Shown: in pieces, positions 53,726 to 57,855 of the stretch
Layout of the letters: every line of letters begins with the position of its first letter
How positions within the stretch are numbered: the stretch's first letter is position 1
Assembly: GCF_963853765.1 (NCBI RefSeq)
Contig: NC_088859.1
Coordinates: 8,866,001-8,930,000, forward strand
Direction of reading: 5' to 3'
DNA from: Magallana gigas
Lineage: Eukaryota
Length of the DNA: 64,000 nt
Notes under the pieces: model-generated
Told to the model about the DNA's origin: nothing
Databases searched by the model: none
What the model saw: the letters and a program-made list of their open reading frames with translations, nothing else
Translations under genes and position numbers: made by a program

Positions 53726-56700
53726 TCAGTCCTGTGTATAGTTAGAGATTTCTATGAGGTTGTGGTCAGGGTCTCGGAAGTACACCGATTTGATTGGTCC
53801 AGTGGCACCCGTTCTATCCACAGGACCTTCGGTAATTTCCACATTATTTTCCTATTTTAAATAAAGAGAAACAAATATATGTAATTTTAAAATGTATTCT
53901 GAGGTACGCTAGAAAAAGATCATTATACAGTCATTTAGGGTATCCTGTCAGAATCACTTTTTGCAATTTGGTCGCAAAATAGGTAATTCATGTAAATAAC
54001 TACCAGGTTTCCGGAAAACAAAATAATAAAATAGTTTAAAAAGCCCCGGAAATGTAAGATATTTTGGACCACACGAAAAAATGATTCTCAATTTTCTTCG
54101 ATAAGTAGGGCTACAGCTTAAATGAGAAATTTTGGCCAGCCCTTCTTAAAGATCAGCGAGTACATTAATTCAATCACATTATTTTGTTAATGTATAATAT
54201 TTCCTCTTAAAATTGTGTATGTATATAACATATATTGCTGATGACTGTTGGATATTTTTATTTATAGATGTTTCGTACATTGCATAGCGATTCCTTTTAC
54301 TTCCGAAAACACAAAACACGGAGTGATTCGAAATTCCCAAACAACTACCCACTCCAAAATCATAAGGAAAAAAAGATTTACCTCTAAATGTTTAATAACA
54401 GAATTCAAATTTTCCCGCGTGATAAAACAAACGTCTGCTGAGCCGGGGGTCGGTAGGTGAGCTTTTGGTTCAAATTCTTTTCCATGCTGGTGGATGTTGA
54501 TCTTCTGGGAGCCGAAAGTTAAAGCTTTTCTGTTGCCCTTTATTATTAGAAAAAAGACGATTTAAATGATAATACATGGTCTTATTGAATTAAACAATGA
54601 ACAAGTACTCTTTCTATTAAGAATTTTTGAATGCCAAAAAACCTTGAATGTTGTAACTTCCATTCCCAGCACCTTCGAGTAGAAATCGCATGTTTTGTTG
54701 ATATCCTTGACTGTTATAACAAAATGGTCGAGGTTGTCAATCTTAAATCCACTGTATTGCCTCAAAGAGGCACTGCAAGTTAACGTCTAGACCAAAAATT
54801 AAGAAAAATTCACTAGATTAAAATTTCAGATTTCAGATAAGTAACATAAAAACTGTTTATATGAACTTTTTTCCATACACACTTAGATGATATTTACATT
54901 ACTAACCATCCTGTATGTCTGGAGACTAGATACTGATTACCATATAAGATTCAGAATAAATGACAATACACCAGATTAAATTATTGGAGATCTCCATGTT
55001 GTTGTTTATTCATGGTCACGTTTTACTACGTGTAGAAGTTCGTCATACCACAAACTGATGATATGATGCACATATTTTCCTTTCTACACGTACGCGTACA
55101 CGTTGGTTTACTAAACCTCTCTATTATTAGTAAATAGAGAGGTTAAGCAGACCAACGTGTACGTGTAGGTTACAAGTTAGAACTACGCGTACCAGCTCAA
55201 TTACTTTTCTTGTTTAGCAGTTGTAACGTGTACCTGTACGTGTAAATGTTTTTATGTAATTATAGATATCCTCTCCTACTATATGCATATTTTTATTTAT
55301 CGCAAATTAATAAGATAACGGAGCCATTGCATGTTTTGAAGGAAGATATGCGTGAAATAAAACGCCAATGACATATTAAACTTTGATGAAAATTTATGTT
55401 TGCAGATATCAGTATTCGCATTAAATATTCAGGCTTAAGAAAAGTTAACATATTTATTAATAGAGAGGTTTAACAGACCAACGTGTACGTGTACTTGTAC
55501 GTGTAGGTTACAAGTTAGAACTACGCGTACCAGCTCAATTACTTTTCTTGTTTAGCAGTTGTTACGTGTACTTGTACGTGTAAATGTTTTAATGTAATTA
55601 TGGATAACCTCTCCTACTAAGCTGAGAATGTTGGTTATAAACGAAAAGTAGGAATTCTGCATGTGTTAATTTTATTAAACGTCATTTTTTATATATGCAC
55701 ATTTTTATTTATCGCAAATTAATAAGATAACGGAGCCATTGCATGTTTTGGAGGAAGAGATGCGTGAAATAAAACTCCAATAACATATTAAACGCTAATG
55801 AAAATTTATGTTGGTAGATATCAGTATTCGCATTGAATATTCAGGTTTAAGAAAAGTTAACATATTTATTAAAATTAATATACAACAGGGAAACAGAGGC
55901 TACAAGTTCGACCTTACGTGTACTTTGCAATTTACACGTATGTTCATTCGGGTACACACGTGTAGAAATTCGTCATTACACAAACTGATGACGTAATGCA
56001 CATATTTTCCGTTCTACACGTACACGTACGCGTACACGTTGGTTTGCTAAATCTCTCTAATATAGCCAACAAGGAAACAGAGGCTACAGGTTCGACCTTA
56101 CGGGTACTTTGCAATTTACACGTATATTCATTCGAGTACATGTACATACGTGTAGAAATTCGTCATTACACAAACTGATGACGTGATGCACATATTTCCT
56201 TTCTACGCGTACACGTACGCGTACACGTTGGTTTGCTAAACCTCTCTATTATCTCAGGAATATTTTGGCATGAAAATATTTGTAGACTACTTCTAAATCA
56301 GTTTACCAAGTCCAAAACACTGCGCAACTTGTGCGCAATAATGAATATATCAAAATGGAGGAGATCATACTTCATTTGGTTTGTGGCTGTTAATAGAGAG
56401 GTTAAGATTTGAAACGTGTACTGGTACGCGTACGTGTGTTAAAACTTCACGTACACGTACACGTTTTTGTAATTTATCAGTTGAGATTTCTTAACTTGTA
56501 GGATATAAATAGAGAGGTTTAGCAAACCAACGTGTACGCGTACGTGTACGTGTAGAACGGAAAATATGTGCATTACGTCATCAGTTTGTGTAATGACGAA
56601 TTTCTACACGTATGTACCCGAATGAACATACGTGTAAATTGCAAAGTACCCGTAAGGTCGAACTTGTAGCCTCTGTTTCCCTGTTGTCTATTAATTTTAA

Positions 56701-57855
56701 AAAATATGTTAACTTTTCTTAAGCCTGAATACTCAATGCGAATACTGATATCTACCAACATAAATTTTCATTAGCGTTTAATATGTTACTGGAGTTTTAT
56801 TTCACGCATCTCTTCCTCCAAAACATGCAATGGCTCCGTTATCTTATTAATTTGCGATAAATAAAAATGTGCATATATAATAAATGATGTTTAATAAAAT
56901 TAACATATGCAGAATTCCTACTTTTCGTTTATAACCAACATTCTCAGCTTAGTAGGAGAGGATATCCATAATTACATTAAAACATTTAAACATACAAGTA
57001 CACGTTACAACTGCTAAACAAGAAAAGTAATTGAGCTGGTACGGGTAGTTCTAACTTGTAACCTACACGTACAAGTACACGTACACGTTGGTCTGCTAAA
57101 CCTCTCTAATGTGTACGTAAATCGACGCAGTTTTGTGACATGAATTTATTTTGTTAATTCCAAATAAATGGCAAATTTCTTATCAATTTTCATGCAAATG
57201 AAGTTTAAAATCTATATAACGTATCACAATAATACATTCACTCATCAAAAAGATTTTGTTTGTTGTAAAAAGCTACACGTACGTGTAGACGACACTCTAC
57301 AAGTTTAGAGAACGTGTAGAAACCATGTCGTCACAAAAACTGATGACGTAATACGCGAAGAATTTAGGTGATTCACCGAGTTCACGTACACGTACCCGTA
57401 CACGTTTGAAATCTCAACCTCTCTAATAAAGTTATGTACTTACATCTACCGAGTTAATTTTTCTTACTTTTTACGATCAATTTATTAAAAGAAAGGTGTA
57501 AATATAAACAATTAAATGTTTTCTTTGATGATTCATGCATGTTATGAAGGTAGCGATCATTGTAGAAAAAAAAATAACGTAACGCAGATTATGTTTTTCT
57601 GCAATGTCGCCACCTCCATATTCCGCATAAATCACCAAAAAGTTTAAATGACACCTACTGCTTTCCATAGCTTTAGTATCATAAACTACAAAGAGAAAGT
57701 GAAAAATCAATGTGATCCTTTCCTGAAAGGGAATGCAAACTACCTGTCTCAATAAAATATATATAACAATGTATCTATAAAATATCTATCATTTATGTAC
57801 ATACCTTGCAAAAAGAATTTGTCGCTGATCTGAAAATTGGAGTCAGTAGATTCAT
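53726..57855 (-). CDS. GLOD5: Glyoxalase domain-containing protein 5 (VOC family), about 158 aa, 4 exons, mitochondrial-type leader
   Basis: Exons 57855-57805, 54786-54643, 54537-54382 and 53851-53726 splice in phase 0 (477 nt). [50 protein letters not shown] and [31 protein letters not shown] closely match human GLOD5. Exon 1 ([17 protein letters not shown], donor GTATGT) is my best choice but is less certain than the other three. Confidence 0.93.
55020..57427. mobile_element. Cluster of nested, tandem and inverted MITEs (TIR AATAGAGAGGTTT..CCAACGTGTACG) in GLOD5 intron 1
   Basis: Full copy at about 55459-56061 and an inverted full copy at 56508-57110. Partial copies at 55020-55115, 55130-55458, 56070-56250, 56391-56470 and 57280-57427. 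The twin ORFs 55808+ and 56573- in the track reflect the inversion. Confidence 0.85.

Follow-up and report, generated by a model that had tools for sequence, protein, structure and literature searches.

GLOD5 of the Pacific oyster belongs to an ancient linkage group around itaconate synthase genes and may open an itaconate-derived lactone

Described relatives of the animal protein GLOD5 include small VOC proteins encoded in itaconate loci of bacteria and of a fungus. In Pseudomonas aeruginosa, deletion of PA0880 (RdoPA, 127 amino acids) abolishes the degradation of 2-hydroxyparaconate, an oxidised itaconate lactone, and expression of the protein yields itatartarate (PMC9875883). PA0880 is 59.7% identical to Rdo1 of Ustilago (PMC9875883), whose gene lies beside the itaconate cluster of that fungus together with the gene for the itaconate oxidase Cyp3. 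In Salmonella, STM3117 is the last gene of the itaconate response operon of pathogenicity island SPI-13; it is co-transcribed with the ripC, ripB and ripA homologues and is induced by itaconate, and its function is unassigned. Here we describe a GLOD5 gene of the Pacific oyster that lies in one cluster with ACOD1, a gene for an IRG1-type cis-aconitate decarboxylase, in a 64,000-nucleotide stretch of the Magallana gigas genome (assembly GCF_963853765.1, contig NC_088859.1, positions 8,866,001 to 8,930,000 of the forward strand), referred to below as the window. An initial annotation of the window had named the three itaconate-locus proteins and the conversion of 2-hydroxyparaconate to itatartarate by PA0880, and the literature agrees with it on both points.

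The same annotation called GLOD5 functionally uncharacterised, and indeed the literature searched holds no assigned function for it and no paper in which GLOD5 and itaconate appear together. The sole biochemistry is a test in which recombinant GLOD5 was autonitrated with peroxynitrite (PMC12890929). This could mean that GLOD5 is a protein-nitrating catalyst like GLOD4, with no small-molecule substrate of its own, but we regard this as very improbable. The autonitration is not specific, because every protein in that panel showed it, and a nitrating function leaves unexplained why a small pocket-type enzyme should be so strictly conserved across bacteria and why it should be found in catabolic operons. 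A preprint reports a 'VOC' gene near IRG1/IRG1L, without the name GLOD5 and without a link to Rdo1, PA0880 or STM3117; its authors saw no obvious functional clustering and inferred no function.

The oyster GLOD5 gene spans positions 53726–57855 of the window on the minus strand, limits that had been annotated exactly to the base. The ATG begins at 57855, and the TGA stop occupies 53728–53726. The four exons are all in phase 0, the introns are all of the GT–AG type, and the product is a VOC-fold protein of 158 amino acids. The parts of the gene are as follows.

57805..57855, minus strand: exon 1, the ATG and N-terminal leader codons (17 codons), phase 0 with a GT donor; its joint 54786|57805 occurs in RNA reads and a contig, and the matching part is present in the transcript product P0003.

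54787..57804, minus strand: intron 1, 3018 nucleotides, with nested inverted repeats resembling miniature inverted-repeat transposable elements (MITEs).

54643..54786, minus strand: exon 2, the last 12 leader residues followed by the first beta-alpha-beta module with the LDHFV motif (H38); PF00903 match with E 1.2e-7; RNA joints on both sides.

54382..54537, minus strand: exon 3, a conserved block of 27 residues with many of the 38 positions conserved throughout the family.

53726..53851, minus strand: exon 4, a 19-residue block and the TGA; RNA joint 53850|54381; limpet, chiton, fish and lizard have an exon boundary at this position too.

Splicing was confirmed at each of the three joints, that between the leader exon and exon 2 among them, by raw RNA reads and by a transcript contig, and the strand signal of the reads agrees with a minus-strand GLOD5 RNA. 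P0003, a transcript product assembled from public runs (50 member sequences), likewise has 158 amino acids and the same architecture; it differs from the window protein by only three substitutions (I7V, T20A and Q82E), none of them at a conserved position. The exons are present in RNA-type runs of about nine studies, and a Pacific oyster proteomics paper includes a GLOD5 entry (PMC9575672). Given the exact ATG and TGA, the match to P0003, the RNA splice joints, the RNA runs and the proteomics entry, the gene is real, expressed and intact. At residue 82 (window region 54489) the window allele has Gln, in contrast to Glu in P0003 and other oyster homologues, and the RNA reads carry the other allele. 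Since this residue varies across the family (E, Q or L), Gln82 is probably a neutral polymorphism.

A Pfam match to PF00903 lies in exon 2, and both PF00903 and PF12681 are recorded for P0003; a Pfam scan of exons 3 and 4 alone gave no match because the pieces are too short. The protein consists of a single VOC/glyoxalase-fold domain of about 125 residues, which aligns end to end with GLOD5 and with bacterial VOC proteins of 126–128 amino acids. Its best match among solved structures is human GLOD5 (PDB 3ZW5, E 2e-48, about 63% identity over the 127-residue core), almost level with which comes Salmonella STM3117 (3HUH/3HNQ, E 1.6e-46, about 59% identity). The remaining matches were a 'biphenyl-diol dioxygenase III-related' protein and, weakly, FosB (E ≤ 1e-3); glyoxalase I and methylmalonyl-CoA epimerase were absent among the matches at this threshold. 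The oyster homologues are named GLOD5 by NCBI, and the protein atlas places the oyster protein with GLOD5-named clusters. The protein of exon 3 is 89–96% identical to GLOD5 of other oyster species, and the whole oyster protein, leader included, is 56–59% identical to GLOD5 of fish and frog.

Phylogenetic analysis of 24 animal and 92 bacterial homologues united the animal proteins in one clade (value of 90 in the Shimodaira–Hasegawa-like approximate likelihood ratio test, SH-aLRT) with a mollusc half and a vertebrate half. STM3117 and Rdo1 were not part of this sequence set and were compared by PDB alignment and by published identity. Furthermore, oyster, limpet, chiton, Danio, Anolis and a vertebrate known from metagenome contigs all have introns at residues 65/66 and 117/118. 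With 3ZW5 as the top match, one clade with vertebrate GLOD5 and common intron positions, the oyster gene is, by sequence comparison, a true GLOD5 orthologue, as had been claimed at the outset. By the same comparison, GLOD5 with its introns was already present before molluscs and vertebrates separated.

The leader of the window protein comprises 29 extra residues with three Arg/Lys, no Asp/Glu and nine Ser/Thr, and ends in RQY|S. This make-up recurs in 15 other animal GLOD5 proteins, and most of those examined carry 23–40 extra N-terminal residues that are rich in Ser/Thr and include 3–6 Arg/Lys and 0–2 acidic residues. Oyster GLOD5 leaders end in R-x-[YFL]-S. The leader is encoded on a separate first exon in oyster and Danio. 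Vertebrate GLOD5, the human protein included, shares with the oyster protein a basic N-terminal extension on its own exon in addition to the intron positions and the clade, but the leader sequence itself is not conserved. Bacterial homologues have no extension and start at the catalytic core. The initial annotation had quoted the leader residues correctly and described them as mitochondrial-type, which fits a presequence (basic, free of acidic residues, rich in Ser/Thr, with Arg near the putative cleavage site). Judging from this composition, the leader probably sends GLOD5 to mitochondria. The preprint reports that IRG1L of zebrafish is a protein of the matrix and that presequences are predicted for many IRG1 proteins of the mollusc type.

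The neighbours of GLOD5 in the window that bear on its function are the following.

9225..10777, plus strand: ACOD1/IRG1-type cis-aconitate decarboxylase with MmgE/PrpD N and C domains; its homologues are named cis-aconitate decarboxylase.

14766..15134, minus strand: exon of a PhyH-type 2-oxoglutarate/Fe(II) dioxygenase (PF05721), which adjoins ACOD1.

Plus strand, converging on GLOD5: acetate-channel (Gpr1/Fun34/YaaH)–YrdC fusion gene, the immediate neighbour of GLOD5.

The order along the window is ACOD1, the PhyH-type dioxygenase, transposon remains, two YrdC-fusion genes and GLOD5. ACOD1 of the window is 92% identical to the transcript product P0172, a neighbour of the 493-amino-acid P0173. 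In the YrdC fusion, the Sua5_yciO_yrdC match lies at 49546–49899, and the Gpr1_Fun34_YaaH match at 47498–48601 is weak (E 0.0065; 16.5 bits, under the Pfam cut-off of 25 bits). GLOD5 had been annotated as standing beside ACOD1; the two are indeed members of one cluster, but not literally adjacent, being 43 kb apart with the PhyH gene, both YrdC fusions and the transposon remains between them. The lists of RNA runs for GLOD5 and ACOD1, which carry no condition labels, have two studies and no runs in common.

The same cluster was found in other molluscs. The limpet Patella caerulea has a POZ gene followed by GLOD5, a converging YrdC fusion and then ACOD1 with PhyH beside it, and GLOD5 and ACOD1 are about 36 kb apart. 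The locus tags of the two genes are three apart in Patella and seven apart in Bradybaena, and in C. virginica GLOD5 faces a YrdC fusion. Database records place GLOD5 and ACOD1 on one scaffold or chromosome in at least ten other bivalve and gastropod species. The amphioxus ACOD1 gene has two YrdC fusions directly beside it.

In vertebrates the partner of GLOD5 is IRG1L. The two genes lie tail to tail, 3 kb apart in the lizard Anolis sagrei and 8 kb apart in the catfish Tachysurus, and a tail-to-tail pair of GLOD5 and an IRG1L-type gene, separated by 4.8 kb, is present on two Joint Genome Institute (JGI) metagenome contigs from a non-mammalian vertebrate (Ga0065711_1001194 and Ga0181612_135282). 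These contigs have 50% GC and short introns, and the pair occupies 9252–17579 of locus L094. GLOD5 is thus set differently in the lineages: tens of kb from ACOD1 with YrdC fusions between them in oyster and limpet, abutting IRG1L in catfish and lizard, and abutting a SET-domain gene in the frog. No partner was found within 10 kb of GLOD5 in Danio aesculapii, Spea and a chiton, or of IRG1L in Elgaria. A 'decarboxylase-like' gene of Polymixia adjoins a KCTD12-type gene, as has been reported for the neighbourhood of IRG1, not of IRG1L. The initial annotation had considered that the linkage might be specific to one species. It is not, because it is kept in molluscs, catfish, lizard and the metagenome vertebrate, with the limpet showing the same cluster and IRG1L lying 3–8 kb from GLOD5 in the vertebrates. 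The linkage of GLOD5 with an IRG1-type gene predates the protostome–deuterostome split and was later loosened in some lineages. GLOD5 belongs to an ancient animal linkage group that centres on the itaconate synthase gene, ACOD1 in molluscs and IRG1L in vertebrates.

The wider surroundings of the vertebrate genes were also recorded. The frog GLOD5 has SET-domain, PA-domain and chaperonin genes as neighbours, and an RNF6-like RING gene neighbours GLOD5 in both Tachysurus and Danio aesculapii. Since the neighbours of GLOD5 differ by lineage, the IRG1L–GLOD5 pair sits in different wider neighbourhoods.

The joint transfer of a bacterial VOC and MmgE/PrpD gene pair was considered as the origin of the linkage. 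It was not supported: among bacterial metagenome loci, the 76 nearest to animal IRG1 show at most 32% identity and in no case carry a GLOD5-like gene in their flanks. The great difference between GLOD5 and IRG1 in their distance from bacterial homologues also counts against it.

In sequence, the oyster protein stands close to the VOC proteins of itaconate loci: it shares 60.3% identity with PA0880 (over 126 residues) and 62.9–65.3% with four others. At 38 core positions, conservation reaches at least 95% in the 24 animal as well as in the 92 bacterial sequences, and PA0880 has all of them; no core position was conserved in the animals alone. Nothing in these alignments suggests that the chemistry of the animal enzyme has changed. 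The initial annotation expected GLOD5 to group with the itaconate-locus proteins, and this is borne out at the level of the family (59–65% identity) but not as a clade of their own, as these proteins occupy at least four places in the tree.

The P. aeruginosa cluster consists of ich, an acyl-CoA dehydrogenase gene, the VOC gene, an MmgE/PrpD gene, ict, ccl and a TRAP transporter. Comparable ich–acad–ict–ccl clusters with a VOC gene were found in Phaeobacter, Pseudomonas kuykendallii and Oceanobacillus, and a VOC–PrpD pair was found in a Thermodesulfobacteriota genome. PA0880 resembles the oyster gene in its sequence and its itaconate-pathway setting, and an MmgE/PrpD-family gene directly adjoins it. 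It differs in having no leader and in its operon (ich, acad, ict, ccl, TRAP transporter), which is catabolic; the gene for a biosynthetic enzyme accompanies animal GLOD5. STM3117, with about 59% identity and an itaconate-induced operon, is likewise bacterial, free of a leader and part of a degradation operon. The closest analogue of the animal arrangement is Ustilago Rdo1, which stands with a biosynthetic itaconate cluster and an itaconate oxidase and is of the same family by its published identity to PA0880. However, the Ustilago oxidase is the cytochrome P450 Cyp3, not a PhyH-type dioxygenase, and the lactonase activity of Rdo1 is proposed, not confirmed.

In some bacteria (P. aeruginosa, L003, 8019–9790; also L046 and L088), a GLOD5-like VOC gene directly adjoins an MmgE/PrpD-family gene, which is the same family pair as GLOD5 and IRG1L in vertebrates. 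The PrpD proteins of L046 and L088 are only 23–26% identical to oyster ACOD1, and the MmgE/PrpD neighbour of PA0880 is a methylsuccinate isomerase, distantly related to IRG1.

By analogy with PA0880, we suggest that GLOD5 may be a small metal-dependent VOC enzyme that opens an itaconate lactone of the 2-hydroxyparaconate type, the likeliest of the readings considered here, to which we give a probability of roughly 0.4. ACOD1 (IRG1L in vertebrates) would make itaconate, which an oxygenase would then oxidise; the candidate for this step is the PhyH-type dioxygenase. Its gene adjoins ACOD1 in oyster and limpet; among the vertebrate GLOD5–IRG1L pairs examined, such a gene was absent within 10 kb. 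GLOD5, imported into mitochondria, would remove or mature the reactive lactone: the substrate would chelate the metal of the active site through its alpha-hydroxy-carboxylate, and the lactone ring would be hydrolysed to the open-chain dihydroxy acid (itatartarate). Other VOC enzymes suggest, by analogy, H38, E86/E88 and E151 as the likely metal ligands, all of which are conserved. In this scheme the import into mitochondria, the ligands of the metal, the nature of the substrate and the preceding oxidation are inferred, and the data themselves show the gene structure, expression, orthology, conserved linkage and family identity.

That GLOD5 may act on an oxidised itaconate lactone had been proposed in the initial annotation, and the family identity and the conserved linkage speak for it. 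Several observations weigh on the other side. The literature searched contains no report of 2-hydroxyparaconate or itatartarate in animals. The evidence for PA0880 is genetic and metabolite-based, with no purified enzyme (PMC9875883), and a later paper terms its activity 'proposed'. According to the preprint, therian mammals lost IRG1L, while GLOD5 persists in them, and the GLOD5 gene of the frog Spea bombifrons is without an MmgE/PrpD neighbour within 10 kb. In the three raw RNA runs the expression of oyster GLOD5 was low, with a depth of about 1–4 over its exons. In addition, a dedicated 'itaconate' VOC subclade was rejected, the five itaconate-locus proteins falling in at least four places of an unresolved bacterial bush, and most bacterial members of the family lie outside itaconate loci.

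The last point was established with the 80 species-representative bacterial loci closest to GLOD5 and their neighbours within 10 kb. The family is large and highly uniform: more than 7,900 proteins score E ≤ 1e-10, and its bacterial members are 60–70% identical to the oyster protein. Itaconate or methylsuccinate genes were present in only three of the 80 loci, and the other contexts were diverse. An itaconate-locus setting is a recurrent minority habit of the VOC family, not its definition, and because so few of the loci carry such genes, the general substrate of the family may be a commoner compound than one derived from itaconate. Clustering of the neighbours of about 60 loci yielded only a family of about 300 amino acids in eight loci (possibly regulators) and genus-specific genes; no recurrent bacterial neighbour that would name a general substrate came out of it.

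GLOD5 could accordingly act on a common small metabolite unrelated to itaconate, such as an alpha-hydroxy-acid lactone or a reactive carbonyl, the linkage being a frozen ancestral gene order held by shared regulatory DNA or by history. The 77 of the 80 best bacterial loci that have no itaconate genes, with their highly varied neighbours, are in keeping with this, as are several plasmid-borne copies that stand alone with a LysR regulator or in no clear context. An identity of 60–70% between bacteria and animals suits a housekeeping detoxifier. The persistence of GLOD5 in mammals that have no IRG1L and in a frog with none within 10 kb also speaks for this explanation, as does the judgement of the preprint authors on clustering. 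On the other hand, gamma- and alphaproteobacteria, Bacillota, a fungus, molluscs and vertebrates show the association with itaconate genes independently of one another, and vertebrate GLOD5 and IRG1L are immediate tail-to-tail neighbours only 3–8 kb apart. Non-developmental microsynteny rarely persists from molluscs to vertebrates, and this rarity also argues against a merely frozen order. We consider the common-metabolite explanation somewhat unlikely, though a serious one.

GLOD5 could also belong to itaconate metabolism but act on another compound or by other chemistry: the conversion of itaconate to its isomers mesaconate or citraconate, the epimerisation or isomerisation of itaconyl-, mesaconyl- or methylsuccinyl-CoA, or the cleavage of itaconate–glutathione adducts. 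The linkage evidence is the same as for the opening of a lactone. Isomerases such as glyoxalase I, epimerases such as methylmalonyl-CoA epimerase, and thiol transferases all occur in the VOC superfamily; FosB was the only other solved family matched. Moreover, the bacterial clusters with the VOC gene process methylsuccinate and CoA esters, and the STM3117 operon has no known itaconate oxidase. However, deletion of PA0880 left growth on pure itaconate unaffected, the methylsuccinate steps are assigned to PA0879 and PA0881, and glyoxalase I and methylmalonyl-CoA epimerase are missing from the solved-structure matches at E ≤ 1e-3. We find this alternative quite unlikely.

Lactone opening by GLOD5 may also be placed in a broader and still more tentative picture, which we hold to be doubtful. 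An itaconate-modifying pathway older than the separation of molluscs and vertebrates would have comprised an IRG1-type decarboxylase, a linked oxygenase and lactone opening by GLOD5, and human GLOD5 would be the surviving enzyme at a locus that lost IRG1L in therians. If this is true, unrecognised itaconate-derived immunometabolites exist in animals. The human enzyme GLOD5 is conserved and its structure has been solved, but no reaction is known for it. Itaconate is a central metabolite of immunity, and what becomes of it in animals is only partly mapped. The conserved linkage and the 60% identity to a bacterial lactone-detoxifying enzyme point to one small set of substrates, and these candidates are testable with material already described, namely 2-hydroxyparaconate-producing fungal strains (PMC11626831) and a P. 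putida deletion strain (PMC9875883). A lactone activity, if confirmed, would give a function to an orphan human gene and new itaconate derivatives to animal immunity; if it is refuted, one of the few long-lived non-developmental gene linkages of animals is left to explain.

Some further features of the window concern repeats. Intron 1 (54787–57804) contains nested MITE-like elements with common terminal repeats (about TAGAGAGGTTTAGCAAACCAACGTGTACG) and a 599-nucleotide inverted duplication, whose copies at 55461–56059 and 56510–57108 are 97% complementary. RNA reads of this intron fall on both strands, and a 600-nucleotide skip joint (56507 to 57108) corresponds to one copy of the duplication exactly, so that the skipped copy is absent in some alleles or in other genomic copies. 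At 52400–52800 the RNA depth is 100–280, compared with 1–4 on the GLOD5 exons, the signal is on the plus strand, and many reads continue into unlike sequence. Such a signal points either to a dispersed repeat carried in many transcripts or to an abundant 3′ end that lies downstream of the YrdC fusion. Finally, two reading frames identified by translation only were a Tc1/mariner-type transposase frame within the cluster (20995–22056) and a long reverse-transcriptase-like frame just past GLOD5 (59839–61822).

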